A stretch of 64,000 bases of DNA, from NCBI RefSeq assembly GCF_036588685.1, contig NC_086379.1, forward strand, positions 62,310,001-62,374,000, read 5' to 3'. This DNA is from Mytilus trossulus (lineage: Eukaryota). Both the position numbers and the translations under genes were made by a program. Each line of letters opens with the position of its first letter. Position 1 is the stretch's first letter. Below are positions 1,758-37,680 of this stretch, piece by piece. A model generated the notes under the pieces. It searched no databases. It was not told the DNA's origin and worked only from the letters and a program-made list of their open reading frames with translations.

Positions 1758-2486
1758 TTAGGTTTCTGCAAAAGCTAATGGAAAATAAAAGAAAATGGCC
1801 ACAACAATTGTCATAATCAGGAACAAAAGGAAAAATGTCCAGTCTAAAACACCTCCTACATCTTGCCATTGCATCTCATCCCAGTCTGTGTATTCTTCTG
1901 TCACACTCTCATCGTCGTCATCTTTATCAAACTCGTCATCTCCCCATTCATCAGAACTATCACCTATTTTACTCTTTCGTTTCTTTTTAGAACAACAATT
2001 TTTACCCTTCTGGCATTTAAGGAAGGCTGTAACATGTTTAAGCCAAACTGGAATGGCTGTAGCCTCTTCTTGAGAATATACTCTCAAGGTCAAGGTCGCC
2101 ATGGCCATCGATAGTGAGCTCATAACTAACATTAATGTCAGATAGATGCTCAAAATTGTGATTGGACTTGACGAACGTGGAATGTTATCAGCTATCATTG
2201 TAATATAAATAACCAGAGATAAGAAGGTAACAACCGAGTAGGCAATTCTTTCTCCCGATTCTGCTGGCATCAGGTATGAAAGACTGCTTAAAATACACAA
2301 TATCAGAACCGGTAAGGCGTAATTGATGAGAACATTTCCGGGACGTCTGGATATTCGTAGATTAAATGTTAAATATGACGCTCCATTTATTGTACTTGTT
2401 GATATAGAGGTTTGGTCAATCCACCACTGAACGTTTTCTGCGAAGTAGGTCAGCTCTATTGCAGAGGTAGAGTTCTCAAGTTTAAC
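1758..2486 (-). CDS. Cys-loop ligand-gated ion channel subunit 1 (nAChR-like, non-alpha), exon 2: loops F/C and M1-M4
   Basis: Acceptor ttttttattgctttaaAG|GTT at 2487/2486; joins in phase 0 to exon 1 giving FTPLGYLEDQ|VKLENSTS, collinear with paralogues; pre-M1 RRP, M2 PAESGERIAYSVVTFL, MA motif WQDVGGVLD. Joined protein 419 aa. Confidence 0.92.
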   Translation of the reverse strand, partial: VKLENSTSAIELTYFAENVQWWIDQTSISTSTINGASYLTFNLRISRRPGNVLINYALPVLILCILSSLSYLMPAESGERIAYSVVTFLSLVIYITMIADNIPRSSSPITILSIYLTLMLVMSSLSMAMATLTLRVYSQEEATAIPVWLKHVTAFLKCQKGKNCCSKKKRKSKIGDSSDEWGDDEFDKDDDDESVTEEYTDWDEMQWQDVGGVLDWTFFLLFLIMTIVVAIFFYFPLAFAET

Positions 2487-2625
2487 CTTTAAAGCAATAA
2501 AAAACCATAACATATTAGCTTGCTTAAATAAGAAGCACAAGCACGTTTTCATTTTGAATCGACAATAAAAGAAAAAGGTGTACTAGGTTTATTACATCTA
2601 ATATTGATATACGATATAAACTGTA

Positions 2626-3060
2626 CACAGCCAATTTTGAATAGGTACTTAGTCTGTACCAAAAATCTGTAATACTGGAAATCTACTTTTCATATTCAGT
2701 ACTATTTTGTTACTTTAAAAGTATTGTAATATTTAGGTACCTGTATTTAACAGTACTTGATTTGTACTTGAAAATTTAAGTACTGCATATGTATGGTTAC
2801 AACGTTACATTTTAAGCATTTTGATAGTATGCCTGCTTCAAATCTCTTCATATTATGATATTTAAACATGGAATTTTGTATTCGCTTTTGGTATTATTTC
2901 TATACCAAATTTTAAGTACAAATCAAGTACTGTAAATTACAGGTACGTAAATAGTACAATAATTTTAAAGTAAAGAAATAGTACTAAATATCAAAAGTAA
3001 ATTTTCAGTATTACAGATTTAAAGCACAAAAATAGTACCTAATATGCAAAATTGGCTGTG
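2626..3060. mobile_element. MITE with long imperfect terminal inverted repeats (CAC...GTG ends, TA target duplication) in the intron of subunit 1
   Basis: TA|CACAGCCAATTTTG ... CAAAATTGGCTGTG|TA; arms stay complementary for about 150 bp; the empty site rebuilds AAACTGTAGTG, the motif of the adjacent minisatellite. Confidence 0.88.
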
Positions 3061-3084
3061 TAGTGTATATCATAAACTAATACG

Positions 3085-4040
3085 ATGTAAACTGTAGTGT
3101 AGCCTACACTTACACGATACATGTTTAATGTAAACTGTAGTGAGTTAAACACCTGTATGATGTTACCTGTAGTGAGTTTTACACTTCTATGATGTTATCT
3201 GTAGTGATTTATACACTTGTATGATGTAAGCTGTAGTGATTTATACACTTGTATGATGTAAGCTGTAATATAGCCTACATGTACGATGTATGTATGATGT
3301 AAGCTGTAATGTAGCCTACATGTACGATATACCTATAATGTAAACTGTAGTGAGTTTTACACTTCAATGATGTAATCTGATGTGAGTTATACCTTTGTAT
3401 AATGTAAACTGTAGGGTAGTCTACACTTGAACGATATTCGTATAATATAAACTGAAGCGAGTTATACACTTGTATTATGTAAACTGTAATGTAGCCTACA
3501 TGTTTATGATGTATGTATGACGTAATGTAAACTTTAGTGTTGTCAACACTTGTATGATGTATGTTTGATGTAAACTATAATGTAGCCTACACTTGTACAA
3601 AGAAGATTTGACGAAACTGTAGTGAGTTATACATTTTTATAATGTAAACTGTAGTGAGTTATATATTTTTATAATGTAAACTGTAGTGAGTTATACATTT
3701 TTATAATGTAAACTGTAGTGAGTTATACATTTTTATAATGTAAACTGTAGTGAGTTATACACTTGTATAATGTAAACTGTAGTGAGTTATACACTTGTAT
3801 AATGTAAACTGAAGTGAGTTATATTTGTATAATGTAAACTGTAGTGAGTTATACATTTTTATAATGTAAACTGTAGTGAGTTATACATTTTTATAATGTA
3901 AACTGTAGTGAGTTATACACTTGTATAATGTAAACTGAAGTGAGTTATACACTTGTATAATGTAAACTGAAGTGAGTTATACATTTGTATAATGTAAACT
4001 GTAGTGAGTTATATACTTTTATAATGCAAACTGTAGTGTA
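3085..4040. repeat. Minisatellite, ~32-bp unit AATGTAAACTGTAGTGAGTTATACATTTTTAT
   Basis: Tandem copies visible, most homogeneous at 3615-4040 and degenerate towards 3085. Confidence 0.92.
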
Positions 4041-4079
4041 GCCTTGAATTGTGACCTTCACTTGTACTTAGTGTAATGA

Positions 4080-4470
4080 AGCCTATACTTGTTCGATGTG
4101 AGTTTGTAGTCCTATAGTTTTACGATGTGAGTTTGTAGTCCTATAGTTTTACGATGTGAGTTGTAGCCCTATAGTTTTACGATGTGAGTTTGTAGTCCTA
4201 TAGTTTTACGATGTGAGTTGTAGCCTATAGTTTTACGATGTGAGTTGTAGCCTATAGTTTTACGATGTGAGTTGTAGCCTATAGTTTTACGATGTGAGTT
4301 GTAGCCTATAGTTTTACAATGTGAGTTGTAGCCTATAGTTTTACAATGTGAGTTGTAGCCTATAGTTTTACGATGTGAGTTGTAGCCTATATTTTTACGA
4401 TGAAAGTAGTAGCCTATAGTTTTATGATGTGAATTATAGCTAACACGATACGGTGTAAGTTGTAGCCTAT
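4080..4470. repeat. Minisatellite, 27-29-bp unit ACGATGTGAGTTGTAGCCTATAGTTTT
   Basis: Tandem copies visible; shares GATGT and TGTAGCCTA words with the neighbouring array. Confidence 0.92.
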
Positions 4471-4655
4471 TTTTGTTTAAGGCTACTGTTCATTACTTAC
4501 AAGTGAATGCTGTTCATTTCATAAATTAAGTGTAAAGTATTGTTCATTCCATGAAAGTGAAGACTTCTGTATATTACTAATAATGTAGACTATTATTCAT
4601 TCCTGATAAACTAGTGAGAGAAAAATAGTTGTAAATAAGTCTGTTAAATATTTAC

Positions 4656-5186
4656 CTGATCTTCCAAATAACCTAACGGTGTAAACTGGAGCTGGCATGT
4701 ATGTGTATCGAAAGGATAATGTGACATCGTAATTTTACAGCTAGTCTTTGATACTATTCCTACTTTCCATGTGTGCGTTCCGTCCTTATTTACTCGGATT
4801 TTATTACTCCTGTAACCTAAGGTTTGGAGTGTTTCAACTGTATTGTGTATGGAAATAGGTGGTAACCAAACGTTGTCTTGACCAATCATCATTTCATCTA
4901 TACCAGCAGCCCAGCCCGTCAACAAATCATTGGTCCAAGATGCTTCTATAAATCCAACTAAATGTATTTGTCCATGTGCTTCGTCCATCTTATTTATAGC
5001 AATTAGTGAATACTTCATTGAAACAATCATCTGATCTGATTGTGTTGCCTTTGGATAAATCTTTTTATTGTAAGATGTGTATTCCGTTCCTGATAGAAAT
5101 GACTGGAAATCTGTATTTGATGCACATAGAATGGTACTGAATAACGAAGTTATCAAAATAACACAAATATACATTGTTCTAAGCAT
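4656..5186 (-). CDS. Cys-loop ligand-gated ion channel subunit 1, exon 1: signal peptide and extracellular domain
   Basis: Hydrophobic N-terminus, WLPPISIHN (loop A), Cys loop CKITMSHYPFDTHTC; donor CAG|GTAAAT at 4656/4655 after 177 codons. Confidence 0.92.
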
Positions 5187-5664
5187 TTTTTAAAAATAAG
5201 ATTTTTGGTACATTCGGTTTTTAAAACAATAGAAAAATATAAGTATTAAAACGTTTGTAAATAAAAAGTAATAACTCTTTCGCTTCACTGGATGGGTTAA
5301 GATAAACTGTCATTGTTTTATGATTCGCGCTAATTATTTTGAATAAAGGATAGCGAAAAAACGACACCAAACAGAATAACTATTTAAAAAAAGAATAATG
5401 ATCATGTGTTGGTACCCAAATAGTTTATTTTTACTGACGACTTCATAAAGGCTTTAAAGAAATTTACGTGTAAATGAAAACGAAAAAAGTGGTGACCAAG
5501 GGGTTAAATTGGGAGCTTGATTTAAATAAACAGAAAATGTCCAACAGCTTGAACAATTCCTAAAAAAGATTGCTATCATGTTGTAAAAAAATGACAAAAT
5601 TACAAAGAAATATGGCAAACACTTACAAAACATGTTAGCAAAACAAAACAAAACTAGTATGATA

Positions 5665-6812
5665 TAAAAGAGGGACGAAAAATACCAAAGGGACAGTCAA
5701 ACTCATAAATATAAAACAAACTGACAACGCCATGGCTAAAAATGAAAAAGACAAACAGACAAACAATAGTACACATGACACAACATAAAAAACCAAAGAA
5801 TAAACAACATGAACCCCACCAAAAACTAGGGGTGATCTCAGGTTCTCCGGAAGGGTAAGCAGATCCTGCTCCACATGTGGCACCCGTCGTGTTGCTTATG
5901 TGATATAAAATCCGATGAATAGTCTAATTCGGTAGGTCACATTCATGAAAGGGAAGGGGATTGTAGTAACGACGTAAGGAACATATCCGATATCATTTTT
6001 GAAACGGTTATTCTATAACGGTCAACCAACTCGTGATGGCGTCCGTAAAATTTACGAAGGGGCGATTTCAACTTCACCATTTGAAACTCTTGGTTTAATA
6101 GCTTCCTTGTGAGCAGCAACCCTCTATCAAGAGAATCATGATATGAAATGCAAGCACGGGAATATCGTATCAATTGGGATATATACCCCGTATGCAGGTG
6201 CTGCTGGAATGTTGCTACTTAGAAATGGAAAGTTCACAATTGGAAAGCTGAAATCATCTCTTTTGTCGTAAAGTTTTGTTTTCAACCGACCCTCATTGTC
6301 AATTTCTAGATGTAAGTCAAGATATAAAGCCGACTTAACTTATCTGTAGTATCCTTTATCTCTAGTTCAATGGTATAGATGCGTTCCACATAGTCACCAA
6401 ATTTTGAATTATTTAGTGAAAGAACATCATCGATATAGCGGAAAGTAGAGTTAAAGGATATTGCTAACTTCTTATCTTTCTTCCTAAGAAGTTCCTGCAT
6501 GAAGTCAGCCTCATAATAATAAAGAAATAAGTCGGCAAGTAGAGGGGCACAGTTTGTTCCTTTTGGAATGCCGACAGTCTGTTGAAAAACACGTCCTCCG
6601 AAAGTAACAAATATGTTGTCAATCAATAAATCAAGCATCTTGATAATATCAGTTTCAGAGATTTTTTTGTTTGAATCAGAGTGATCCTTTACAAAGTAGG
6701 ATTTATTCCTTTCTAAGACAAGATACTTGTATCTACGTTGGCCATTCTTTTTTATGAAGCAAAGCAATACCAACTCTTTCAATTTGTCTTTTAATTTGGA
6801 ATGTGGAATACT
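5665..6812 (-). mobile_element. 5'-truncated Penelope-like retroelement: C-terminal RT region plus 3' module, frameshifted
   Basis: QTVGIPKGTNCAPLLADLFL and FRYIDD RT motifs, then after a frameshift near 6340 LYDKRDDFSFPIVNFPFLSSNIPAAPAYGVYISQLIRYSRAC, typical of Penelope-like RT thumb; no GIY-YIG domain follows; 3' module (about 5665-5940) recurs elsewhere in the window. Confidence 0.8.
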
Positions 6813-6839
6813 TTTTAATGAGTGTCAGCTAACCGTTTA

Positions 6840-10860: not shown

Positions 10861-12198
10861 CTACTGGTAATAATGAGCAAGCAATGGCGTCATAAAAATC
10901 ATAGTCAAAAGGAAATTGACAATAATAAATACAACAAAACATATTTTATCAAATGTCCTTGCTACATGTTTCCATGTAATTTCATAATCGTTCTTGTATA
11001 CTTTATCATCTTTCCGGATAACAATAGGAGCAAAATCTTCCTCGTATTCGGTTTGAAATTTCGGATGAGAAAAGAAGTTATCGTCGTTGTCATCATATTC
11101 CGATAAAGTCAGAGGAGTTACCTTGTTTTGGCGCGAAAGATCATGCTTGTGTTTGTTTTCATAGCAACCGCAACATGCAATAAAACGGACTATTCTCTGC
11201 GGAACCATATTTCGAGGATCTTTACTGTGAATAGTCAATGATAAAATAGCTAGATAAGTAAGAACAGAGACGACAAGAATCATCGTTGTAAAATAAAATG
11301 ACAAAATGGACATTTGTGTCGACGACTTTGGCAATGATCCGGTGACCATAGCCATAAGAATTGAGATTGAAAGGAAAACAAACATGGCGAATCCGACCCT
11401 TTCTCCAGAACCTGCCGGTACAAGGAATATGAGGTTACTCAAGAATACTAACATCAGAAAAGGTAAAAAATGCGTCAGCAAAAAGTACTTTGGATTTCTC
11501 TGCAGTGTTAGCTCGAAGTGTGCAAAAGACGTGCTCTCTTTGGTTTCTGTGTAAGGATCGTGCGATTTAAGGCGCCATAATTCATGCTCGTTATAGTATG
11601 AAGTGTCTAAACTTTCGTTGGTAATTGAAATATTAACTTCTGAATCCTTGAAACCCCAAGGAGTAAATGTAATGTTACATTTCTGAGTATCAAAGGGGAA
11701 ATAAGTTGAATCTACTTGACAGTTTGTTTTGGATACAATAGAAGGCGACCATTTCATTACTGCAGATTCATCTTTGGTTGGCATCGAGATCCTTACATCT
11801 GTATTGGCATCTCCAATCATTGAAATATTTGAATGTGAATTAAAAATGCTGATGGTTGGTACCCACACAACGTCTCGAGGCACAGAAATTTCAGTAACAA
11901 AAGGCGGACCGGATACAGCGGATATTAAGTCATCATCCCAAGTTATATCCATGAGTCCATTTACCTCTAAGTATCCATCTGCTTCATTAAATTCTCCTAT
12001 GCTCACAAGTGTGAAATTCACATCCACAGTTATCTGGTCACTTTGTTCTTTTTTAGGGAAGATTTCATCGACAAAACAAGTTGTACAAGTTATAGCATTT
12101 GTATAAAAATTTAAAATATCCTGATATGATGGCGCTCCAGAAACTGGATAAAAGTATAAAATCAAAGTTAAAATCAACACTGTTTTAACCGTAGCCAT
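10861..12198 (-). CDS. Cys-loop ligand-gated ion channel subunit 2 (nAChR-like, non-alpha), single coding exon, 445 aa
   Basis: Signal peptide; WVPTISIFN; Cys loop CQVDSTYFPFDTQKC; loop B PWGF; M2 GSGERVGFAMFVFL; four TM helices; WKHVARTFD. Confidence 0.96.
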   Translation of the reverse strand: MATVKTVLILTLILYFYPVSGAPSYQDILNFYTNAITCTTCFVDEIFPKKEQSDQITVDVNFTLVSIGEFNEADGYLEVNGLMDITWDDDLISAVSGPPFVTEISVPRDVVWVPTISIFNSHSNISMIGDANTDVRISMPTKDESAVMKWSPSIVSKTNCQVDSTYFPFDTQKCNITFTPWGFKDSEVNISITNESLDTSYYNEHELWRLKSHDPYTETKESTSFAHFELTLQRNPKYFLLTHFLPFLMLVFLSNLIFLVPAGSGERVGFAMFVFLSISILMAMVTGSLPKSSTQMSILSFYFTTMILVVSVLTYLAILSLTIHSKDPRNMVPQRIVRFIACCGCYENKHKHDLSRQNKVTPLTLSEYDDNDDNFFSHPKFQTEYEEDFAPIVIRKDDKVYKNDYEITWKHVARTFDKICFVVFIIVNFLLTMIFMTPLLAHYYQ

Positions 12199-13145: not shown

Positions 13146-14552
13146 TTATTCTGTTGTAACACCGGTTGTTCCCAATAAGAGGGGTAAAATGTAATAGCCT
13201 GAGATTATAAGTGTTCCAGACATGAAAATAAGGAACAATGTTTTATCAACAGTTCTCCCGACAACGGTCCATGTTATCCCGTATCGACATTCCTCTTCCT
13301 CTTCATCGTCGTCGGATACTTCATCGACATATTCCATTGGTTGCACCATCGACTCATCATCGGTCACGACAGAAGCGCCACTGGACAAATCGCGTTTGAC
13401 CTCCGTAATATCGTTCCCCGTCATTTCTTTGGTCAATGTCTGTTTACTTTCAGAACGTTTTCTGCGTTTAGGAGGCATGAACTTTGATTTCCGACACAAG
13501 CGACATGTCAAAAACCCAAATATGTAAACTAAAATCCATGGCACTGGGGTATTGTCCTCTTCCTTTGCATAAATTCTTAGCGACAAAATTGTCACGAAAG
13601 TTGTTAAACTGCTGATGGATAGCATTATCACAAGATAATATACCATATTAGACATAGGTTTGGATGTTTCGGGGAGACTTTGCGATACGATTGTCAAATA
13701 AACGGCAAATGTAAGAAATATATTCGTTGCAAATCCCATTCTTTCTCCTGCTGTCGGTGGAAGTACAAATGATAAAGAGTTAAGCACACCCAGAAGTACA
13801 ACCGGAATGATCATGTTTATCATGAAATAAATGGGTCGTCTTTTCACAGTAATAGATAGTGAGAGGATGGATCGATTTGATAGACTTGTTGTGTTTATTG
13901 TCGACGACAACAGCTCCCATTCCTGATTTTCAACGAATTGATCTGTACGAGCATATGTTGTCGTCGGTAGGAACTCGACCTCGTGACTCTGATATCCCCA
14001 CGGTGTGAACATTATTTCGCACGTCTGTTCGTCAAACGGAAAGTCAGTGGTATCTACCGTGCAGCCAGTTTTGGTAACAATACCAATATTTAAGTCTACT
14101 TGACCATTAGTTAGAGTCAACGTTGCATCATACCCACCTTTTATGAGTGGTGTTAGACTGGACACTGAATTAAACACGGTGACCGGTGGTAGCCATATAT
14201 CATCTGACTGAAGATCAATCTCCATCAGAAGATGAGTTTTAGGAAGATAATTAAGAACTATATACTCGTCCAACCATCTTACTTTCATTTTCATAATCAA
14301 TAATAATGTTCCCGCCACTTCGTCAAACTCCGGAAGTTGTATCAAGCTGAACTGCAAGTCCACATACAATGTTTCATTATTCCAAAGCATAGGAATCACA
14401 TTTTTGTCGTAAGATTTTAAAAATAAAGCACTCATCAACTTTCTCACGTGTGAAGCAGTTGGTATTGTTTGTGAAGAACAGTTATTACAATCTAACTGGA
14501 TGGAACTTTGTATCAGTGTTAGTAATAGTAGGCAGATCGGTAAAGCAGCCAT
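13146..14552 (-). CDS. Cys-loop ligand-gated ion channel subunit 3 (nAChR-like, non-alpha), single coding exon, 468 aa
   Basis: Signal peptide; WLPPVTVFN; CTVDTTDFPFDEQTC; PWGY; M2 TAGERMGFATNIFL; WTVVGRTVD. Confidence 0.96.
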   Translation of the reverse strand: MAALPICLLLLTLIQSSIQLDCNNCSSQTIPTASHVRKLMSALFLKSYDKNVIPMLWNNETLYVDLQFSLIQLPEFDEVAGTLLLIMKMKVRWLDEYIVLNYLPKTHLLMEIDLQSDDIWLPPVTVFNSVSSLTPLIKGGYDATLTLTNGQVDLNIGIVTKTGCTVDTTDFPFDEQTCEIMFTPWGYQSHEVEFLPTTTYARTDQFVENQEWELLSSTINTTSLSNRSILSLSITVKRRPIYFMINMIIPVVLLGVLNSLSFVLPPTAGERMGFATNIFLTFAVYLTIVSQSLPETSKPMSNMVYYLVIMLSISSLTTFVTILSLRIYAKEEDNTPVPWILVYIFGFLTCRLCRKSKFMPPKRRKRSESKQTLTKEMTGNDITEVKRDLSSGASVVTDDESMVQPMEYVDEVSDDDEEEEECRYGITWTVVGRTVDKTLFLIFMSGTLIISGYYILPLLLGTTGVTTE

Positions 14553-22846: not shown

Positions 22847-25740
22847 AGGAGTAACATGACGGCTGGTGTCACTTATAGAACAGGAACTGTTGACCCTCCG
22901 GTGAAGGAGTAACATGACGGCTGATGTCACTAATGGAACAGGAACTATTGACCCTCCAGTGAAGGAGTAACATGACGGCTAGTGTCACTCATGGAATAGG
23001 AACTGTTGACCCTCCGGTGAAGGAGTAATATGACGGCTGGTGTCACTTATAGAACAGGAACTGTTCACCCTCCGGTAAAGGAGTAACATGACGGCTGGTG
23101 TCACTTAAAGACCAGGAATTGTTGACCCTCCGGTGAAGGAGTAACATGACGACTGGTTTCACTAATGGAACAGGAACTGTTGAACCTCCGGTAAAGGAGT
23201 TACATGACGGCTGGCGTCACTTAAAGACCAGGAACTGTTGGCCCTCCGGTGAAGGAGTAACATGACGGCTGGCGTCACTTAAAGACCAGGAACTGTTGAC
23301 CCTCCGGTGAAGGAGTAACATGACGACCGGTGTCACTTATGGAACAGGAACTGTTGACCCTCCGGTGAAGGAGTAACATGACGGCTGGTGTCACTAATAG
23401 AACAGGAACTGTTGAACCTCCGGTGAAGGAGTAACATGACGGCTGGTGTCACTTATGGAACAGGAACTGTTGAACCTCCGGTGAAGGAGTAACATGACGG
23501 CTGTCGTCACTAATGGAACAGGAACTGTCGAACCTCCGGTGAAGGAGTAACATGACGGCTGGCGTCACTAATGGAAAAGGAACTGTTGACCCTCCGGTGA
23601 AGGAGTAACATGACGGCTGCTGTCACTTATGGAACAGGAACTGTTGAACCTCCGGTGAAGGAGTAACATGACGGCTGGCGTCACTAATGGAACAGGAACT
23701 GTTGACCCTCCGGTGAAGGAGTAACATGAAGGCTGGTGTCACTTATGGAACAGGAACTGTTGACCCTCCGGTGAAGGAGTAACATGACGGCTGATGTCAC
23801 TAATGGAACAGGAACTATTGACCCTCTTGTGAAGGAGTAACATGACGGCTGCTGTCACTTATGGAACAGGAACTGTTGACCCTCCGGTGAAGGAGTAACA
23901 TGACGGCTGCTGTCACTTATGGAACAGGAACTGTTGACCCTCCGGTGAAGGAGTTACATGACGGCAGGTGTCACAAATGGAACATGAACTGTTGACCCTC
24001 CGGTGAAGGAGTTACATGACGGCTGGTGTCACTTATGGAACAGGAACTGTTGACCCTCCGGTGAAGGAGTAACATAACGGCTGGTGTCACTAATGGAACA
24101 TGAACTGTTGACCCTCCGGTGAAGGAGTTACATGACGGCTGGTGTCACTTATGGAACAGGAACTGTTCACCCTCCGGTGAAGGAGTAACATGACGGCTGC
24201 TGTCACTTATGGAACAGGAACTGTTCACCTCCGGTGAACGAGTAACATGGCGGCTGCTGTCACTTATGGAACAGGAACTGTTCACCTCCGGTGAAGGAGT
24301 AACATGACGGCTGCTGTCACTAATGGAACATGAACTGTTGACCCTCCGGTGAAGGAGTTACATGACGGCTGGTGTCACTTATGGAACATGAACTGTTGAC
24401 CCTCCGGTGAAGGAGTAACATGACGGCTGCTGTCACTAATGGAACATGAACTGTTGACCCTCCGGTGAAGGAGTTACATGACGGCTGGTGTCACTTATGG
24501 AACAGGAACTGTTGAACCTCCGGTGAAGGAGTAACATGACGGCTGCTGTCACTTATGGAACAGGAACTGTTGAACCTCCGGTGAAGGAGTAACATGACGG
24601 CTGGCGTCACTAATGGAACAGGAACTGTTGACCCTCCGGTGAAGGAGTAACATGAAGGCTGGTGTCACTTATGGAACAGGAACTGTTGACCCTCCGGTGA
24701 AGGAGTAACATGACGGCTGATGTCACTAATGGAACAGGAACTATTGACCCTCTTGTGAAGGAGTAACATGACGGCTGCTGTCACTTATGGAACAGGAACT
24801 GTTGACCCTCCGGTGAAGGAGTAACATGACGGCTGCTGTCACTTATGGAACAGGAACTGTTGACCCTCCGGTGAAGGAGTTACATGACGGCAGGTGTCAC
24901 AAATGGAACATGAACTGTTGACCCTCCGGTGAAGGAGTTACATGACGGCTGGTGTCACTTATGGAACAGGAACTGTTGACCCTCCGGTGAAGGAGTAACA
25001 TAACGGCTGGTGTCACTAATGGAACATGAACTGTTGACCCTCCGGTGAAGGAGTTACATGACGGCTGGTGTCACTTATGGAACAGGAACTGTTCACCCTC
25101 CGGTGAAGGAGTAACATGACGGCTGCTGTCACTTATGGAACAGGAACTGTTCACCTCCGGTGAACGAGTAACATGGCGGCTGCTGTCACTTATGGAACAG
25201 GAACTGTTCACCTCCGGTGAAGGAGTAACATGACGGCTGCTGTCACTAATGGAACATGAACTGTTGACCCTCCGGTGAAGGAGTTACATGACGGCTGGTG
25301 TCACTTATGGAACATGAACTGTTGACCCTCCGGTGAAGGAGTAACATGACGGCTGCTGTCACTAATGGAACATGAACTGTTGACCCTCCGGTGAAGGAGT
25401 TACATGACGGCTGGTGTCACTTATGGAACAGGAACTGTTGAACCTCCGGTGAAGGAGTAACATGACGGCTGCTGTCACTTATGGAACAGGAACTGTTCAC
25501 CTCCGGTGAAGGAGTAACATAACGGCTGCTGTCACTTATGGAACAGGAACTGTTGACCCTCCGGTGAAGGACTTACCTGACGGCTGGTGTCACTTATGGA
25601 ACAGGAACTGTTGACCCTCCGGTGAAGGAGTAACATGACGGCTGCTTTTACTAATGGCACATGAAATGTTGACCCTCCGGTGAAGGAGTAACATGACGGC
25701 TGCTGTCACGTACGGAACAGGAACTGTTCACCTCCGGTGA
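22847..25740 (+). repeat. Satellite array, 58-bp unit GAGTAACATGACGGCTGGTGTCACTTATGGAACAGGAACTGTTGACCCTCCGGTGAAG, about 50 copies
   Basis: Head-to-tail copies with period 58 and no spacers; internal 926-bp (16-unit) duplication; unit resembles part of the Penelope-like 3' module. Confidence 0.97.
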
Positions 25741-26761
25741 ATATCCGGTTTTTGTGGTGATTAGGTTGCTATTTTTTTAGTTTTACATGTTGTGTTCAGT
25801 GTACTGTTGTTTTTTTCAAAGTGTTGTCTGTTGTTTATCTTTGATGTATGATTTCTTTATATCCCTGGAATGGTCTCCCCTTTTTAAGATACTGTAAAGA
25901 TGGAGAACAACAATAAAATATTGTTTCTATTGTCTCTAACTCATGATATTTTTATTTGCGTACATTTCAACCGTATTATTTCCATTCAAATAATTTTCTT
26001 ATGCTCTAATTGCATAAACTGCAATGACATTGGTTTTGTGTATTATATCATATTTTGGATACTTATTTTACTGATTTGCCATTAAAGACGAAATTTCACC
26101 ATAACAAGCTCATTATACAAAAAAACATGTATACCCTTTGTGTTGTGTATATAACATATTCTCGTTTGAAAACCTTAAATTTGATGCACTTGTGTCAAAT
26201 GGTAGGATAGTTTTGAAACAGGAGAAGAAACTAGAGATATTTCATACAAGTTAGATGTTTCATCAATCCTCAGTGACTTCCGACGTATGGAAGTCAGAGA
26301 AATTTTATATTAAATGTTGGATTTTGTAAAAAAGAAATTATCTGAAAGTTCATGTATTAAATCGTGGTATTGTTTTAGTTGATATCTTAATTGTAAGATC
26401 GTGAAATTACTATTAAGATTCAAGGATGCTTGTTAATTTTCTTAAAAAGCAGAAATACAAACAAAATACAAAACACATGTTTAAGCTCTTTTAATAAAAA
26501 AAATCAATTTTTTATTTAAGTTCCTTTCATAAAGGATACATTGTAGTTGAATAAAAAGTATGTCACAAAGTAAAACAAAGTCTCATTAAAAGTCTTTTTT
26601 TATTCTCTAATTGTTAATTGCATGAAAGAGGTTTAATTAATTGCTTCTTCGGAAATTGTCAGAGAATTGAATGCAAAGTGAAAATAAAATGCAAATACAA
26701 TCTTGATATCTTTCCGAGTAACATACCAGAACATATTGAAAACACACAATCAAATAGTCAT

Positions 26762-28168
26762 TTAGACATAACCCCCTTCCTTCAACATTGGATTCAAAAA
26801 TACGTATGCAAGGTATGAGTGGACAGCTATCGTGGCAAGAAAAAGTAAATAATCAAAAGCCCGCGAAACTGTTACCCATGTCATTTCTTCGGGAACCCTA
26901 CAAAACCAGCAACGTTCTGAGCATGTTAACTTCTTTGTATACGGTGGTGGTTCTTCAATTTCTTCACGTTTCTTCCATTTATCCCATTTTACATTTGAGA
27001 CCCCAAACTTGTGTTCTTGTGGTAGGTAGTAGACATCAAATTTTCGTTTTTTATCTTCAAAGTCATATGACGAAATAGAAATACCATCTGGGTGAATCGT
27101 TGCTTTCTTTTCCCGCTTACATCTGCATACCATGCAACACATTGTACCAACTACGAACGCTACAACAGACGGTACTTTAAGATCAACAGTCTTAAGATGT
27201 TGTCTGACAGTAAAAATAGAAACTATTGTTATTACACCACTAAAGGCCATTAAAATCACGATATACAATGACAAGGTAGACAGCGGATTAGATGTTCTGG
27301 GAAGATTATCACCAATAATTGTCAGGAAAACGGAGAATGTTAAATAAACAGTCATAGAAAATCCTACTCTACCATGATCTATTGGCATGAGGAATGCAAA
27401 TCCATTTATGATTCCTAATAATAAAATAGGTGCAGCTAAAACAATTACAAAGTACGTAGAACGACGCTTTAAGTGAATAGAAAACGACACATAGGTAGCT
27501 TTGCTTGTTGAGCTCGTGCTTACTGTCGTAGTATTCATATCCCAGATAATGTTTTGAGCGAAGTCTGTCGTGTCGAGACTTGTAGAATTAGTGGAAAGTG
27601 ATAATTCTTCCGGTGAATAATCAAGGTGCGACATATCAAATGAACACGTCTGTGAATCAAACGGAAATAGTTCGATATTCACATCACAACCAGCCTTAAT
27701 GATAAAAGCAGGCTTCCAGGTATGAGTGCCGTCAAATCTCACGTCAATTAGATCATTGTTGGTCCCTACGACGGAAAGTTGATCAACGCCATTGTATGTG
27801 AATATCGGTGGATACCAAAGATCAGAGCGGGGTATTTTTGCTGTAGTGATGACATCTGTTACTCCGACTGGTTTTTCGGTCCATGTTAGAATTTCACTTT
27901 TCCAGGAAATTATGAAATTACCAACTAAAGTTATTGTTCCATCCCTATCAGAAAACTCTTGTATGTTGTCAAGTTTCATTGAAATACTCACATTAAGTTG
28001 GTCGGACTGGTTGTTCATAGGGAAACTCAGTTTATTATAATCAGCAAATATCTTATTGTAAAAGAACTGCCAGTCTGATGCTAAAGTTCCTCCATTTACA
28101 GTTTGGAAACATAACAAAAAGATGAAAATTCCTCCGAAGTTAAACGGTGATAATTTCTTGTCCGCCAT
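26762..28168 (-). CDS. Cys-loop ligand-gated ion channel subunit 5 (nAChR-like, non-alpha), single coding exon, 468 aa
   Basis: Signal peptide; WYPPIFTYN; CDVNIELFPFDSQTC; M2 PIDHGRVGFSMTVYL (no -1' Glu); WVTVSRAFD. Confidence 0.96.
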   Translation of the reverse strand: MADKKLSPFNFGGIFIFLLCFQTVNGGTLASDWQFFYNKIFADYNKLSFPMNNQSDQLNVSISMKLDNIQEFSDRDGTITLVGNFIISWKSEILTWTEKPVGVTDVITTAKIPRSDLWYPPIFTYNGVDQLSVVGTNNDLIDVRFDGTHTWKPAFIIKAGCDVNIELFPFDSQTCSFDMSHLDYSPEELSLSTNSTSLDTTDFAQNIIWDMNTTTVSTSSTSKATYVSFSIHLKRRSTYFVIVLAAPILLLGIINGFAFLMPIDHGRVGFSMTVYLTFSVFLTIIGDNLPRTSNPLSTLSLYIVILMAFSGVITIVSIFTVRQHLKTVDLKVPSVVAFVVGTMCCMVCRCKREKKATIHPDGISISSYDFEDKKRKFDVYYLPQEHKFGVSNVKWDKWKKREEIEEPPPYTKKLTCSERCWFCRVPEEMTWVTVSRAFDYLLFLATIAVHSYLAYVFLNPMLKEGGYV

Positions 28169-29355: not shown

Positions 29356-29389
29356 AGAAAATCTGGTACCGTTTGTGTTTTTAGCTAAT

Positions 29390-30869: not shown

Positions 30870-32204
30870 TCAAGTTGAAACAAAGTTTTCCTTCGCAAGA
30901 TTGATCCAAGGATACATAAACATGAGATACACACAGAAATTAAGAAACAAAAATAAAAATAAGTAAAAAATGTCCATAGTCGATCCAACGGTTTTCCACT
31001 TTATTCTAGGAACTTTCTTCTCCTTTTCAATATCATCTTCCCCATCATCGTCTCTCCTGCGTTTGACTTTCACTTCTTTAACAAATGCCGATGCTGCTTG
31101 AAGTTTGAATCGTTTATTTAGAATGCCATATCCCGACGGTGGTTTCCAGTCGCCGAGTGTTTTTCCTCGACATGGGAAACACCACAACAACGAAACAAAA
31201 CATGACAAGCAGCCCGATACTTTAGATTTACCATGTCGGTGATAGATATGTAACGTAGACGATATATACGATAGAAGCATAATGTTCGTTAAAAACTGCC
31301 AATCAAGAAAATAAACGACAACCGGGATCGGCGATGTAGTTTTAGGTATTTCATCTGTGACAAGGTTTAAAACTATGGTAACGACAAGTGTTCCCGTAAC
31401 GATGTATCTTACTCTTGCTTGATCGTAGGGAATCATGAAAGCAAGAATACTCATAACACCCGTCAGAAGAACCGGAACAATAAAATACATAGCAAAGAAC
31501 GCCCCTCGACGCTGAATCTTTATAGTATATTCCACTTTTGAGTACAATCCTAGAACATATGATGAACTGGTTGACATAATGTTCCAAGAAGGGTTAATGG
31601 CATACTGAGTAAGATCTATTGTAGCGTTCTCGACAGACGGATAAAGTGTGATCATTTCGCTTGTTATTTGCCAAGGTAAAAATGATATAACACATTCATG
31701 TGTATCGAAAGGATAGTATGTCGCATCAACTGAACAATATACTTCGAAATCAAAGTTAGTTTTATAGTAAATACTCCCGTCAGGTTTTAATACCACAGGC
31801 GTTGACGTATGACCAACACGAACTAGGTCCTCTACCGAATTTGTCATGATAATAATAGGCATATAAACATCATCCTGTGATAAAGTGATATTTACACCTG
31901 TTATTCCGGCATTTGTCAGAGGTGTTCGTATTAATTCATCCGTCCATTCCATTTCAATGAATCCCATTAATTCCAACACCGCAGCTTCTTCGTAGTATTC
32001 CTTGATTGCTGTTAAACCGAGGTTTATTGTCACCTGCAGTGGGTCGTCCTGGATTGTTTTGGGACGTACTGCTGTATCGTACTTGGTTTTATCTGCTGGT
32101 GGCTGGACAATATCATCCAAAAAAGTCCCAACGTTCGTTGCAGTGTCTCCATAAATTACCGATGCAATTTCAAATGCTATCAAGAAGATAAGTTTATATT
32201 CCAT
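30870..32204 (-). CDS. Cys-loop ligand-gated ion channel subunit 6 (nAChR-like, non-alpha, atypical M2), single coding exon, 444 aa
   Basis: Signal peptide; Cys loop CSVDATYYPFDTHEC; pre-M1 QRR; M2 PYDQARVRYIVTGTL; WKTVGSTMD. Confidence 0.95.
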   Translation of the reverse strand: MEYKLIFLIAFEIASVIYGDTATNVGTFLDDIVQPPADKTKYDTAVRPKTIQDDPLQVTINLGLTAIKEYYEEAAVLELMGFIEMEWTDELIRTPLTNAGITGVNITLSQDDVYMPIIIMTNSVEDLVRVGHTSTPVVLKPDGSIYYKTNFDFEVYCSVDATYYPFDTHECVISFLPWQITSEMITLYPSVENATIDLTQYAINPSWNIMSTSSSYVLGLYSKVEYTIKIQRRGAFFAMYFIVPVLLTGVMSILAFMIPYDQARVRYIVTGTLVVTIVLNLVTDEIPKTTSPIPVVVYFLDWQFLTNIMLLSYISSTLHIYHRHGKSKVSGCLSCFVSLLWCFPCRGKTLGDWKPPSGYGILNKRFKLQAASAFVKEVKVKRRRDDDGEDDIEKEKKVPRIKWKTVGSTMDIFYLFLFLFLNFCVYLMFMYPWINLAKENFVST

Positions 32205-32527
32205 TGTGAAATCTGTCTGTGCGGTGGAATTGAGTTCCTACTTGTAAATTTATTCTGTTTTGATATAAAAACGACATTTAAAAACAAATACAATTTTAAA
32301 AATAGTAATGGCATGATCGCCTTAGAAAATCACAGTTCCATGTTAACAATTACCTAAAGAACAAGTTTGCCCAAACACAATAACTTTCAATTGATTACAA
32401 TAAAATTAATGTACTAAATAAAATAAAACAATAACGACATACCAAGTCACAAATTATAGCAACTTTATGATTTACAATTAAATTGGATAGTTTTGATTTT
32501 ATTATAACATTGTAAACTTTATAGGAA
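32205..32527. promoter_or_regulatory. Candidate bidirectional promoter between divergently transcribed subunits 6 and 7
   Basis: Only 323 bp of AT-rich DNA with no recognised repeat between the two start codons; no specific promoter motif identified. Confidence 0.5.
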
Positions 32528-33910
32528 ATGAAGTCTTCGTTCGTTTTTACTGTGATTCTAATAATGACCAAGTTTTCATTATTCAAGACACAGACGGAGT
32601 ACCATGATAAATTCAGAACCTACTTATCTGACGTCATAGAAGACGCCGTTGTGCACGATGCAAGGATACGCCCGATGACAGATCAAGCAAACGCCGTAGA
32701 CATTTCTGTGGAATTTCAGATCATATCCATAAGTAAGCTTGATACATTTTCCGGTTCCATGGATTTCGCTGGTAGATTAAAAATGAAATGGACAAGCGAA
32801 GAAGAAATAGTGCGGCCTGATGAACAGAGAAACTGGTTGGACTTTGATGCCAGACTTGTAGACCAAGATAGTATCTGGACACCCGACATCACTGTGTATA
32901 ACTCAATGGGCGAGCGGAAGCGACTTGGAGATTCGTCATTCCGTATTCAAATAGACATGGACGGTAGATGTGAATGGTTATTGGGAGTTGTGGATTCCAC
33001 TTCTTGCACGTTTGATGTGACTTTATTTCCGTTCGACAAACCAATTTGTAACATCGTTTTCACTACATGGAAATACAAAGCTGCTGAAGTTCTATTATCT
33101 GCTCTCAATGATAGTGTTGATATGTCATTATACAACGAAAATAGTGAATGGACGATAGTTAATACTACTTCAAATCTTACAATTCAAAACGAGGTTTCAT
33201 ATCTTAACTATACGATTTACTTTAAACGTGAAGCTGGGTTTGTTTTAGTGAATATGATTCTTCCCGTAATAGTAGTATCCTTACTAAATGCATTAGTATT
33301 TTTAGTTCCTGCAGAATCAGGAGAGCGGTTAACTTATGCCATTTTATTATTTTTATGGTTCGCGGTCTATCTTGATATCATTTCCACGAACTTGCCTATA
33401 TCGTCTGAAAATATGTCAAATTTATCTTTATTTGTTATTTCGATGGTTGGGTTAAGTATTTTAACGATATTTTTGGATGTTATTAGTGTAATGTTGTACA
33501 ATCGCGATGACAAAAAACAAGTGCCTTGGTGTATCGAAGGTTTTGTTCGATGTTTACGCTGTCGGTGTGGTGGTAGTAATCGTAATCGAATTATTCCTTT
33601 CGAAGACGTTGAATCATATGATCAGAACGGCGAAACGCAGATGCTAAACGGAAAGGCACCAACGACTGTAGCGCTTGGCACGAAAAGTAATAACAAAGTA
33701 GAATTAAGACTGAGAGACTTTGAAATGCCAAGAGATGATTTAAAAAGAAAAGAAAACATTGAAAATGAACCTAGGAAGAGAAAATCAGATGAAGTTGATT
33801 GGAAAGTCGTATCTGTTACATTTGATTATATATGTTTTGTATTAACCCTGCTTTGTACTTTAGGACTTTGTGGTTACTTTCTTGTTCCTTTAGTAACTGC
33901 GAATTCATAG
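32528..33910 (+). CDS. Cys-loop ligand-gated ion channel subunit 7 (nAChR-like, non-alpha), single coding exon, 460 aa
   Basis: Signal peptide; RIRP; WTPDITVYN; CTFDVTLFPFDKPIC; TWKY; M2 ESGERLTYAILLFL; WKVVSVTFD. Confidence 0.96.
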   Translation: MKSSFVFTVILIMTKFSLFKTQTEYHDKFRTYLSDVIEDAVVHDARIRPMTDQANAVDISVEFQIISISKLDTFSGSMDFAGRLKMKWTSEEEIVRPDEQRNWLDFDARLVDQDSIWTPDITVYNSMGERKRLGDSSFRIQIDMDGRCEWLLGVVDSTSCTFDVTLFPFDKPICNIVFTTWKYKAAEVLLSALNDSVDMSLYNENSEWTIVNTTSNLTIQNEVSYLNYTIYFKREAGFVLVNMILPVIVVSLLNALVFLVPAESGERLTYAILLFLWFAVYLDIISTNLPISSENMSNLSLFVISMVGLSILTIFLDVISVMLYNRDDKKQVPWCIEGFVRCLRCRCGGSNRNRIIPFEDVESYDQNGETQMLNGKAPTTVALGTKSNNKVELRLRDFEMPRDDLKRKENIENEPRKRKSDEVDWKVVSVTFDYICFVLTLLCTLGLCGYFLVPLVTANS

Positions 33911-34084
33911 AAAATAACTAATAATGATAGTCAATATTATCATCTGCAATTTGAGGGAACAGGGAAACGGGCAATGAAGAATGTAAAACATTTGTAGTTT
34001 TCTTTGTATTTTTCTAATAAAGACATTATTAAATATTCTGTTCCATCTTTTAAAATAAGCAACAGTTGTAAATCGCTGTACAAA

Positions 34085-34410
34085 AGTCATCAATCGAATA
34101 AGGGAAAACAAATTCGGGTTACAAACTTAAACCGAGGGAAACACATCAACTTTAAGAGGAAAACATAGAAACAACAAGAACACTGACTTACTAAAAAAAG
34201 CAAACGCCAACTTACATAGAAACAAACCATTTGATAACAACTTAAATATTCCTGACTTGGTATAGGACATTTTAAGAAAAAATGGTGTATTGAACCTGGT
34301 TTTATGGGTTGCCAAACCTCCCGCTTACATGGCAATTTTAAATTATCGCTAAAATGACAACAGTCATACAATGATTTTCCCAATACAAGTCCAAACAAAT
34401 ATGACAATTA
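34085..34410 (+). repeat. Interspersed repeat, family C
   Basis: AAATTCGGGTTACAAACTTAAACCGAGGGAAAC...CCTGACTTGG...AACCTGGTTTT...GCCAAACCTCCC; other copies at about 22515-22700, 38345-38745 (+) and 39205-39555 (-). Confidence 0.75.
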
Positions 34411-35060
34411 TGGCATTGAAAGGCTATTTTACAATTATTTGGACTACAAATGACAAAACATAACTCATTATCCAAACCAAAAAAGAAATATCTAAAATAC
34501 CGACACAAGTCTTATAGCATTCAAATTTACACTTGACAAAACAGTCATATTCGGGAATAGGTCACATTCGGTACTTAACAGATAGACGACATAGATGATG
34601 AACCACACTTCTGCATATGAAGTCATTTAGTGTGAACATACACGAGCATAACTTATCAATTGATGAAGGACGGACACTATATGAACACTGTTCTGCAGCT
34701 CATTGGTATCCTTTGTAGTAGAACCCTTGGTATTCTTAGCTTTAGGATCTTTTGATTACTTTGTATTAGGAAACTTGTTATCTTTTGTATTATAACCGTT
34801 GGTATCCTACGTATTTGGACCTTTTGTGTCTTTTTATAAATACCATTGGCTACTTCGTTTAAGGATCTTTGGTATCCTTTGTATAAAGAACCTTGGTAAA
34901 TTCGTATTAGCACATTTGGTATCTTTTGTATTGTATAAAGAACGTTGGTTTCGTTTGTACATCTGTGAGTTCTCAACCACCTCCACATTACTTAGGATAT
35001 GGTAGGACTAAAGAAAATCTCCATAATAGTTATCAAATGTACCAGGATTATAATTTAATA

Positions 35061-35102
35061 CGTCAGACGCGCGTTTCGTCTAAATAAGACTCATCAGTGA
35101 CG
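35061..35102 (-). ncRNA. Minimal type I hammerhead ribozyme (Penelope-like/retrozyme type)
   Basis: Minus strand CGTCA CTGATGA GTCT tattt AGAC GAA AC gcgc GT C TGACG: stem I CGTCA/TGACG, core CUGAUGA, stem II GTCT/AGAC, GAAA, short stem III with palindromic ACGCGCGT, GUC cleavage triplet (cut between 35066 and 35065). Confidence 0.88.
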
Positions 35103-36396
35103 CTCAGCTATAAGTTGAATACCCAAAAGTGCAAAAAAGAATGACAAAAAAAACCCAAAACAAAACTGCAGCTAATATTTAAAATATAGATTGCGTGGTG
35201 TATATGATAGCGGCCTGAATATATTAAGTAAAACTAGATATACAAACTTAATCCTAAGTATAAAAAAACTACCGCCTCGGCATTAAGTAATTGTTTAAAA
35301 TCAAATCACGATTATTAAACTTATTGATAAACTTCATATTAAATAATAAAAGTCTGTTTTTTTAACTCGCATTTACATTTTATGTATTAATCTTAGGCCT
35401 GAACACCTTTTTCGTGAATTCATCTTCAATCTAGGATTTAAGAATAATGCCTAACATTGTATAGACAGTTGGCCTACTTCCCTAGGCGTTAGGTTGTTGC
35501 CTAAGATTTAAGATTAATGATGCCTTAATTTACTCATTGTCGCGATCATATAGCTCGATTATTATTTCTTGCCGATAGATAAGTACTCAGTTTCGATTCA
35601 TTATAGAACTATTTGAATCAAAACGGTATTTTTTTTATATTAGTGCAGCGAAATGCGCGCTACACTTAAACCCGAAACATACAAACGTTATTACTAAAGA
35701 AACACTCAAGACGGACAAAGGCTAGAGGTTGATGACCATGGACATACGACAGGGTAAAACATGTTTTGTGATAATAGATCCTCTCCTATGATACAATGTG
35801 AAATAAACACAGACAGAAAATCTTAATTTAATTTTTTTTTAATTTTATTTTGTTTGTGTTTGTTTGAATAGTTTATTTTCTGTCAGTTTTACTATTAAAA
35901 AATATCACAAACTTATTCACTAATGTTACATAAAACCTATTTATTACATCAAATGAAAGTGTAGATATTATAATTGTCAACGGTAACTACCTGATGATCG
36001 AGGACACTTAATATATATATTAAAGATTTTTTTCTTTTTTTTCAATAAGCTTTTTAGGGCAAGGGGTTACGGGTAGAAGTGAACACAATTTGATTGACAC
36101 TTAAAGCAGCCAAATCCTAAACATATTTCAGGTGAATCCATACTTTAATCTTTCTATAATTTGAGTTGTTATTTTAGAATAATGCTAACATGTCAAGGTA
36201 ACTTGACCCAAAAAAATAAATAAAGACACCAGTCATAGTATTTGCATGAAAGTGTTTTCACTCTGATAATTATAAATTGACTTGGAATTTAATACCGTCA
36301 TTGTACTTGCCACATTATAACATTAAAAATTAAAAACAAAAGTTTAAAGCTATGTTAGAAACTGTTTAAAAAAGTTAAGTTGAAGTTTATATAAAC

Positions 36397-37680
36397 ATGG
36401 TTGCAAAATTAATTGTTTTCCTCCAAATCTTCACATATTTTGGATTAGCGGGATCAAAAGACTTGGGTGAACTGAAGGACTTGTTATACTTGTCACATTA
36501 TGGTCCTGACAATCCGTACGACTCAAGGATATTTCCATGCCACTTTGAGTACTGTCTTGTTGGAGTAGAACTAAGTTTCCAACCGAAGTCGATCACAGGA
36601 TTTGTTATGGAGACTGGGATTCTATCGCTGACTGGTAAAATATCTTTATCATGGGTTGATCAAAACATCGGAGAATGGATGATTGGTTCCGAGCATAGCA
36701 GCATTACGGAAATGATTTTACCGGAAGATTATCTATGGCTTCCTACAATAACTGTTTACAATACGGTGAAGGAATTCAAAATGATAAGTGATCCAAGTCA
36801 TAAAGTACGAATTTTGCCTATAGCAGGTACCGGAACTCAGTCCCCAATTGAATGGGTGACAACCCTTATAACAGATATACCATGCGTTATAAATGCTAAA
36901 TATTATCCGTTTGATGAACAGACATGCGAAATAGTTTTCACACCATGGGGTTATAACGTTTCGGAAGTATATCTTTACACAGCAGATGACGTGTTGAATA
37001 CCGCTCAATACGAAGTAAACGAAGAATGGACTATGCAAGCTGGAGCTGCATCTAACTATTCTGTTGATGGAATTTCGTACCTTAAATATGAGTTTAAACT
37101 TAAAAGGAAATATTTATGGTTCTTTATAAATATGGTAGCACCAATCATTCTACTAAGTATGTTGACAGCTTTTGTCAACATGATTCCTGTTGATTGTGGC
37201 GAAAGACTGACATTTCTTCTGACCATATTTCTTGGACTTGCTTTTTATATGGACATGGTGCAAAGAACAATACCGCGAACATCAAATCCAATGCCTTTTA
37301 TTTCATTCTATCTAACAGGTATGGTTTACCTCAATTCGTTTGCTATCATAATCAACATCTTCCTTATGAGGATTTACAACAAGGACCCCGATTCAACTGT
37401 TCCCGTGGCCGTTCGATGTTTCATTGCAACACTAACTTGGCGATGGTGCTGTCCCAAAAAAGTCAAACCGGATCCGGATGCTATCCAGCCAATCGAAACG
37501 GACAAGGAACACACCAGTCCAGTAGAAACAATCACTCTAGCACCTATGGAGAGAATAGACTGGCGAACAACAGGAATAGCATTAGACATTCTTTTCTTCT
37601 ACGTGTTTACTTTTATGCATGTTCTTTGTTCAATACTTTTTCTAGTGCCACTTTCGCAAGGGGCAATTTACAATATTTAG
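36397..37680 (+). CDS. Cys-loop ligand-gated ion channel subunit 8 (nAChR-like, non-alpha), single coding exon, 427 aa
   Basis: Signal peptide; WLPTITVYN; CVINAKYYPFDEQTC; PWGY; M2 DCGERLTFLLTIFL; WRTTGIALD. Confidence 0.96.
   Translation: MVAKLIVFLQIFTYFGLAGSKDLGELKDLLYLSHYGPDNPYDSRIFPCHFEYCLVGVELSFQPKSITGFVMETGILSLTGKISLSWVDQNIGEWMIGSEHSSITEMILPEDYLWLPTITVYNTVKEFKMISDPSHKVRILPIAGTGTQSPIEWVTTLITDIPCVINAKYYPFDEQTCEIVFTPWGYNVSEVYLYTADDVLNTAQYEVNEEWTMQAGAASNYSVDGISYLKYEFKLKRKYLWFFINMVAPIILLSMLTAFVNMIPVDCGERLTFLLTIFLGLAFYMDMVQRTIPRTSNPMPFISFYLTGMVYLNSFAIIINIFLMRIYNKDPDSTVPVAVRCFIATLTWRWCCPKKVKPDPDAIQPIETDKEHTSPVETITLAPMERIDWRTTGIALDILFFYVFTFMHVLCSILFLVPLSQGAIYNI

Follow-up and report, generated by a model that had tools for sequence, protein, structure and literature searches.

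Eight intact genes for Cys-loop receptor subunits, related to those of nicotinic acetylcholine receptors (nAChRs), were found at positions 1758–37680 of a 64,000 bp stretch of Mytilus trossulus DNA (NC_086379.1, positions 62,310,001 to 62,374,000; here called the window and numbered from its first base). This array, with its genes numbered s1 to s8, seems best explained as one ancient, conserved cluster of the intron-poor nAChR family expansion that has been described in bivalves. Judged from the orthology of the encoded proteins, the duplications that gave rise to six of the seven single-exon genes appear to be older than the divergence between mussels and the oysters, pearl oysters and scallops, and these six genes appear to have been kept since then as separate orthogroups in linkage.

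Orthology and linkage

An exhaustive profile search returned 24,310 representatives at E≤1e-3. A word-based homologue search with s6 and s8 found mytilid orthologues only, and the oyster-side orthologues of these two surfaced in the profile search. The original prediction for this DNA, made from the sequence alone, had proposed a phylogeny with bivalve nAChR-like genes. In trees of 96 and 41 sequences, with branch support from the Shimodaira–Hasegawa-like approximate likelihood ratio test (SH-aLRT), six of the seven single-exon subunits each paired with a separate orthologue from oysters, pearl oysters or scallops, at 36–47% identity and with support of 97–100. The nearest non-mytilid sequences came from Pinctada and Saccostrea for s3 (SH-aLRT 97–98) and from Ylistrum and Saccostrea for s4 (98–99). 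Support was 99–100 for the pairing of s5 with a Pinctada sequence (Pinctada imbricata P0074), of s6 with P0063, of s7 with P0065 and of s8 with a Saccostrea sequence (P0060). Identity between s3 and its Pinctada and Saccostrea orthologues was 41–44% over the whole protein and 47% over the columns kept for the tree. All named relatives of the array genes are from bivalves, and the sister subclade holds sequences from Unionida and Venerida.

Forcing the seven window genes to be monophyletic cost 298 log-likelihood units in the approximately unbiased (AU) test (p-AU 7e-68), the group having been named after the tree was seen. A recent expansion specific to Mytilus was rejected by this test.

The accession numbers of the orthologues follow one another in several species. 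In M. coruscus the run is CAC5417394 (s8), 396 (s6), 398 (s4), 399 (s3) and 400 (s2), and in M. edulis it is CAG2248233 (s2), 234 (s3), 235 (s4), 238 (s6) and 240 (s8). The accessions of the M. galloprovincialis orthologues are likewise consecutive. Close accessions were also found in Saccostrea echinata (XP_061175587 for s3 and XP_061175590 for s8) and, on a 262 kb contig, in S. cucullata (XP_062607806 for s8 and 807 for s4). A 48,739 bp contig of another bivalve holds orthologues of s3, s6 and s7 together with P0056, and s6 and s7 orthologues also occur together on a contig of 14,486 bp. This suggests that the array is collinear with its counterparts in M. coruscus and M. edulis, and that the genes are linked in Saccostrea. 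The paralogues within the array are only 23–33% identical to one another, yet six of the seven single-exon ones have one-to-one orthologues in linkage, which is the opposite of lineage-specific birth-and-death evolution.

Sequence constraint

The ectodomain of s3 is 100% identical to that of its M. coruscus orthologue, and those of s6 and s8 are 95–98% identical to their Mytilus orthologues. Across mytilid genera, conservation of the ligand-binding loops A, B and E is close to that of the transmembrane segments M1–M3. In s3 and s6, loop C varied most of all, with 41–55% identity against 77–92% for loops A and B. In s8, loop C identity (64–73%) was higher than that of the Cys-loop (53–67%) and of loop B (60–70%). 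Several features that distinguish the orthogroups persist as far as oysters, namely the loop A Tyr of s7 and s8, an N-R-S sequence in loop C of s3, and the missing Glu at the -1' position of M2 in s5 and s6.

The intracellular M3–M4 loop of s6 is 96–100% identical across mytilid genera, against 75–76% for the s6 protein as a whole. The pattern is normally the other way round, which suggests that an intracellular partner of s6 is conserved.

Layout of the array and gene models

Long open reading frames (ORFs) were read across the array. The original prediction of eight full-length Cys-loop subunits, seven of them single-exon and none disrupted, was borne out. The ORFs lie where it had placed them, all eight are open, Pfam domains were found in all, and a tblastn search with all eight proteins found no further subunit fragment or pseudogene in the window. 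The single-exon genes encode proteins of 427–468 amino acids. The only two-exon gene is s1, on the reverse strand. Its exon 1 (4656–5186, 177 codons) encodes a putative signal peptide and the ligand-binding domain to just past loop B (PF02931, E 6.8e-26), and its exon 2 (1758–2486, 242 codons) encodes loops F and C, M1–M4 and the stop (PF02932, E 3.6e-11). The 2169 nt intron is in phase 0 just after loop B, with a donor CAG/GTAAAT (4656/4655) and an acceptor TTTAAAG/G. The s1 exons were examined one by one.

The next five genes, also on the reverse strand, are s2 (10861–12198, 445 amino acids), which has a Phe in loop A, a Trp in loop B and GER at -1'; s3 (13146–14552, 468 amino acids), with the Pinctada and Saccostrea orthologues described above; s4 (17893–19296, 467 amino acids), with a Phe in place of the loop B Trp; s5 (26762–28168, 468 amino acids), with a loop A Tyr, a loop B Leu and no Glu at -1'; and s6 (30870–32204, 444 amino acids), which is the most divergent member and has Ala at -1' and Arg at 2'. 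A spacer of 323 bp (32205–32527) separates s6 from the divergently transcribed s7 (32528–33910, forward strand, 460 amino acids). Both s7 and s8 (36397–37680, forward strand, 427 amino acids) keep the loop A Tyr and the loop B Trp.

The array runs past the edge of the window. A two-exon paralogue, L021, is found directly upstream (L021:7788-9985, G000:C7:62307788-62309985), so that the cluster consists of the eight window genes and at least one more. L021 is 45% identical to s1 and has a phase-0 intron at the same position. It shares 51–54% identity with one Saccostrea model and one Argopecten protein, to which s1 is only 35–38% identical. The nearest named relatives of s1 and L021, by BLAST only, are from Argopecten and Tegillarca. 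Intact nAChR-like genes also flank the cluster (L002:6762-8033, from G000:C7:62296762, and L022:7013-8197, from G000:C7:62411013), and in the tree these two fall in another clade of the family, with members from contigs C4, C12 and C15.

Genes of the array are already annotated in RefSeq and GenBank across five Mytilus species, where automatic annotation labels them beta-3, beta-4 or alpha-5-like. The s2 protein is 98% identical to the Mytilus cluster P0048, and s8 is 98% identical to an M. edulis protein named beta-4-like. The RefSeq M. trossulus model in the s2 cluster (XP_063447057.1, 'betaine receptor acr-23-like') is a partial sequence of 256 amino acids. This public model looks truncated, as the s2 ORF is intact at 445 amino acids. 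A search of the literature with the annotation names ('acr-23-like', Mytilus) found nothing specific to the array.

Subunit architecture and pore

The ligand-binding domain PF02931 (Neur_chan_LBD; E 7e-26 to 2e-33) and the membrane domain PF02932 (Neur_chan_memb) were both found in all eight subunits above the Pfam cut-offs, on separate exons in the case of s1. Alignments and hydropathy show a C-x13-C Cys-loop with [FY]PFD, four hydrophobic segments and a Leu at M2 9' in every one, as the original prediction had stated for the Cys-loop and the transmembrane helices. A structural model of s3, described below, also shows the helices. The prediction's claim of a signal peptide in all eight held in part. 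Signal peptides were judged by hydropathy alone, and an N-terminal signal-like stretch exceeded the threshold in six subunits, those of s4 and s7 being recognised by eye only. The pre-M1 Arg, the M2–M3 Pro and the Cys-loop residues are invariant in an alignment of the seven full-length paralogues. These features indicate that the array members are non-alpha Cys-loop subunits with what appears to be a complete channel machinery.

The Glu at -1' (GEK or GER) is present in six subunits (s1–s4, s7 and s8), and six of the sequences in the M2 alignment have GER. It is missing through a one-residue deletion from s5 (HG-R) and from s6 (QA-R), the latter also with the Arg at 2'. The deletion is common to every orthologue in the s5 and s6 groups, including that of Pinctada imbricata. 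This suggests that it is ancient and has been maintained, and it may change ion selectivity.

A profile of the eight subunits was compared with sequences in the PDB, and the top 42 distinct sequences were all nAChR subunits, the best being beta4 (E 8e-67), followed by alpha6, alpha1, alpha3 and alpha7. When an AlphaFold2 (AF2) model of s3, with a predicted local distance difference test score (pLDDT) of 75, was compared with solved structures, the closest were muscle nAChR (Z 30.8) and alpha7 (Z 30.2), ahead of beta2 (28.5), 5-HT3A (27.9) and GABA-A (26.3 or less). By both the sequence profile and the s3 structure match, receptors of the 5-HT3, GABA-A, Gly or GluCl type are more distant from these subunits than nAChR is.

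The acetylcholine-binding site

The residues that form the acetylcholine (ACh) site, among them Y93 of loop A, W149 of loop B, W55/W57 of loop D and Y190 and Y198 of loop C, were compared with those of L001, a canonical beta-type gene from the same genome, with PDB nAChR chains, and with 16 ligand-binding domain exons of multi-exon genes of the same genome, of which 15 have the loop C YxCC motif and one is beta-type. The vicinal Cys pair of loop C is present in none of the eight array subunits, with the YxCC exons serving as positive controls, and the loop C hairpin has about six residues fewer than that of alpha subunits. The loop D column reads F, L, K, F, N, F, R, K from s1 to s8, so that none has the Trp found in L001, and this Trp is also absent from all orthologues of the array subunits. 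The loop B Trp is kept in s2, s3, s6, s7 and s8 and replaced in s1 (L), s4 (F) and s5 (L). A loop A Tyr occurs only in s5, s7 and s8, and only s7 and s8 have both the loop A Tyr and the loop B Trp. In loop A, s2 to s4 have a Phe, as L001 does. In these alignments, all four changes listed in the original prediction, namely a short loop C without YxCC, loss of the loop D Trp in all subunits, loss of the loop B Trp in s1, s4 and s5, and survival of the loop A Tyr only in s5, s7 and s8, were recovered.

With YxCC, Y190 and the loop D Trp all missing, s1 to s8 are predicted to supply neither the principal nor the complementary face of the classical ACh site, and would be unable to form this site on either side. 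Since this site is gone and the gating and pore elements are conserved, the original label of orphan-ligand receptors appears fair. The loop B Trp goes back to the ancestor of the whole clade and was lost only in s1, in the s5 group of mytilids and in s4 of Mytilus. The s4 Phe is found in Mytilus only and the other s4 orthologues retain the Trp. As the loop B Trp is ancestral, there may be a ligand site based on cation-pi interaction.

A conserved Tyr or Phe lies on the descending strand of loop C, and in s1, s5, s7 and s8 it is the Tyr of an 'SY' pair. This residue may or may not stand in for Y198, since the shortened hairpin can be aligned in ways that differ by one or two residues. The tip of loop C in s3 carries an N-R-S glycosylation sequon that is kept from Mytilus to Saccostrea and Pinctada, and N-x-S/T sequons are present in loop C of s5, s7 and s8 too. 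A glycan on loop C could cap or reshape the pocket.

Other family members in the genome

A six-frame search of the 1.30 Gb Mytilus assembly with PF02931 gave 438 candidates, of which 150 were scored. The genome thus holds at least 150 scored copies of the ligand-binding domain, mostly full-length domains in single ORFs of about 400 amino acids that form many tandem arrays. In a sample of 16 members from other arrays, none had the vicinal Cys pair or the loop A Tyr, and 15 had no loop D Trp. The loss of the ACh site is ancestral to every orthogroup of the array and appears to be generic in the family, rather than a mark of this array. By Pfam score, the window genes are among the more divergent members, as they reach 92–116 bits in hmmscan, compared with as much as 160 bits in other intronless members and 229 bits in the canonical gene.

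Canonical alpha exons with YxCC are present elsewhere in the genome. Three alpha-type exons of this kind (L031, L032 and L033, on G000:C7 at 83.35, 78.35 and 85.30 Mb) have an M1–M2 linker reading PPESPAK, not SGEK. This linker resembles that of the anion-selective type of molluscan nAChR.

Comparison with known systems

The family expansion itself is not new, as the original prediction had acknowledged. Jiao et al. (2019) described an expansion of nAChR genes in bivalves with intronless tandem arrays of up to 8–12 genes, found arrays common to oyster and pearl oyster, and had already suggested a broadened ligand specificity for environmental monitoring (PMC6896357). The mussel array shares with that expansion genes with at most two introns (seven with none and one with a single intron), a tandem arrangement, a mostly non-alpha character, a principal ACh site that is not kept, and relatives restricted to bivalves. 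No difference of kind was found, and the array is the Mytilus copy of one such array, which appears collinear within Mytilus and linked in Saccostrea.

The cephalopod chemotactile receptors (CRs) CRT1 and CRB1 (PDB 9e6b and 8eiz) share with the array an nAChR-derived pentameric fold, intronless tandem genes and the lack of both the vicinal Cys pair and the ACh cage. The comparison with CRs was made through PDB sequence and structure rankings. Squid CRB1 (Z 23.3, 21% identity) and octopus CRT1 (Z 22.8, 25% identity) were only 16th and 20th in structural similarity to the s3 model, below vertebrate nAChR, 5-HT3 and even GABA-A chains, and neither was among the best 60 PDB sequence matches. The rankings thus point to no special closeness of the array to cephalopod CRs. 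Perez-Moreno & Katz (2026, preprint) proposed ionotropic chemosensory roles for divergent molluscan nAChR clades and reported a 'CR-like' clade that includes bivalves, with the CRs themselves a predominantly cephalopod, lineage-enriched expansion (PMC13174522). In contrast to the CRs, the mussel array genes form old one-to-one orthogroups.

Alpo4 of the annelid Alvinella pompejana (PDB 8bx5) is another lophotrochozoan nAChR-like subunit without the Cys pair at the loop C tip, and agonist screening found none for it (PMC10338036). De Gieter et al. (2023) drew the analogy with CRs for this orphan receptor (PMC10338036). Its similarity to the s3 model is Z 24.3 with 21% identity. Alpo4 is homopentameric and retains an aromatic cage with the loop D Trp in it, whereas the array subunits lack this Trp and have a shorter loop C. 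The vertebrate non-alpha and accessory subunits (beta2 and beta4; beta1, beta3 and alpha5) provide the best sequence match (beta4) and also lack YxCC, and the CHRNA5-A3-B4 cluster resembles the mussel array in that conserved orthogroups are kept in a gene cluster. However, beta2 and beta4 contribute to the ACh site through a loop D Trp, which no array subunit can do, and vertebrate nAChR subunit genes are intron-rich, unlike those of the mussel array.

Neighbouring and intergenic sequences

The original prediction had transposable elements littering the intergenic DNA, and this was only partly seen. Within the array there is one weak reverse-transcriptase fragment (RVT_1, 6306–6782, reverse strand, E 0.001, under the Pfam cut-off), and several satellites were found. 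A clear reverse-transcriptase fragment (49569–50564, reverse strand, E 1.6e-13) lies outside the array. A satellite of 50 copies of a 58 bp unit fills 22846–25741 between s4 and s5 and raises the local GC content to 0.41. Minisatellites with units of 27–32 bp are found within the s1 intron (3128–4440), and a further satellite at 41501–45158 (31/62 bp units, 59–117 copies) shows a strong strand skew (GC skew -0.32).

Exons of a gene with C2 domains, similar to synaptotagmin, lie on the reverse strand at 45559–54845 (45559–45927 and 53976–54845; PF00168, E 7e-17 and 4.5e-24). In Tegillarca granosa, a fused nAChR-like model (KUTeg_004559) adjoins a C2-domain protein (KUTeg_004558). This hints that the C2-domain neighbour is a possible synteny marker and that synteny may reach beyond the array.

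Candidate explanations and significance

The explanation favoured here, with moderate confidence in it as a whole, is that the array is an ancient, conserved cluster of subunits whose channels would be gated by a ligand other than ACh, or which would act as non-binding partners, in conserved roles. The subunits would combine into pentamers, mostly cation-selective, among themselves, with further members of the family, or both. Gating would be by a non-ACh ligand at a non-canonical site, and a small cationic ligand is possible given the ancestral conservation of the loop B Trp. The channels would then have conserved physiological roles, rather than forming a fast-evolving repertoire of environmental chemoreceptors.

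Several points weigh against this explanation. No well-supported non-mytilid orthologue was found for s2 (SH-aLRT 82 at best), linkage in the oysters was inferred from accession order and equal-sized contigs and not read from DNA, and the co-assembly of the cluster subunits is pure inference. Deep conservation is also compatible with a sensory role, as the antennal ionotropic receptors of insects are likewise conserved one-to-one.

The original prediction saw in the array a diversified sensory repertoire like that of the cephalopod CRs, whose pockets would sense algal, biofilm or predator cues in exposed epithelia or settling larvae. The intron-poor genes in a tandem array, the missing ACh cage, the fast change of loop C, which caps the pocket, in s3 and s6, and the bivalve-containing 'CR-like' clade (PMC13174522) all fit this idea, as does the expression of the bivalve family, which is highest in the gill, a water-facing organ (PMC6896357). 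However, the duplicates are ancient and were kept one-to-one in linkage across bivalve orders, and their ectodomains are almost invariant within Mytilus (95–100% identical). The loss of the pocket is ancestral and shared by most of the at least 150 family members, and CRT1 and CRB1 are no closer than vertebrate nAChR or 5-HT3 chains. The sensory reading was therefore not upheld and appears unlikely. A further reading, in which a cluster kept together in pteriomorph bivalves for several hundred million years encodes the dedicated subunits of one or a few heteromeric non-cholinergic channels for a conserved external or endogenous cue, such as a settlement, feeding or ciliary-control signal, would make the array a bivalve counterpart of the CRs that arose independently and much earlier. 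This must be regarded as quite speculative, and the odds are well against it.

The array subunits could instead be structural or accessory subunits that take the non-binding places next to YxCC alphas in ACh-gated heteromers, where they would adjust conductance, trafficking or desensitisation in the way of vertebrate beta1, beta3 and alpha5. Their non-alpha character, the loop A Phe that s2 to s4 share with L001, the many canonical alpha exons in the genome and the annotation names are all in keeping with such a role. One-to-one orthogroups are expected of dedicated heteromer subunits, and the conserved intracellular loop of s6 fits a function in trafficking or scaffolding. On the other hand, non-alpha genes far outnumber ACh-competent alphas, with 99 of 132 genes in Crassostrea gigas being non-alpha and only 13 having a complete principal site (PMC6896357), and the pocket residues specific to each orthogroup are conserved, suggesting that the pocket is still in use. 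An accessory role is improbable on this balance. That the genes are decaying, functionless retrogene relics is very improbable indeed. Intron-poor genes do show little or no expression more often than intron-rich ones (PMC6896357). However, the eight ORFs, 1.3–1.4 kb long in DNA of about 33% GC, are open, as are their orthologues across bivalve orders, and the gating residues are invariant. Full-length copies were also found on contigs of 1.6–3.9 kb in many independent assemblies, including four copies of s3 on contigs of 2.77–2.90 kb, and such short contigs are suggestive of transcripts, though not proof. Pseudogenes were ruled out, as all ORFs and orthologues are intact.

The family, its arrays, the loss of ACh-site residues and the idea of a sensory function are already published (PMC6896357; PMC13174522). 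What is added here is a modest point, that the array is an old, linked set of orthogroups with pocket and pore signatures specific to each subunit, and not a young, diversifying repertoire. The interest of the array lies mainly in this deep conservation. Its antiquity restricts the range of hypotheses, in favour of conserved ligands or fixed heteromers, and single-exon genes with orthologues in oysters, pearl oysters and scallops are tractable for expression cloning. If the cluster does respond to a non-cholinergic ligand, it would represent a bivalve system of ionotropic signalling or sensing beyond the cephalopod case, and would help to explain why sessile molluscs have kept 100–200 nAChR-like genes.

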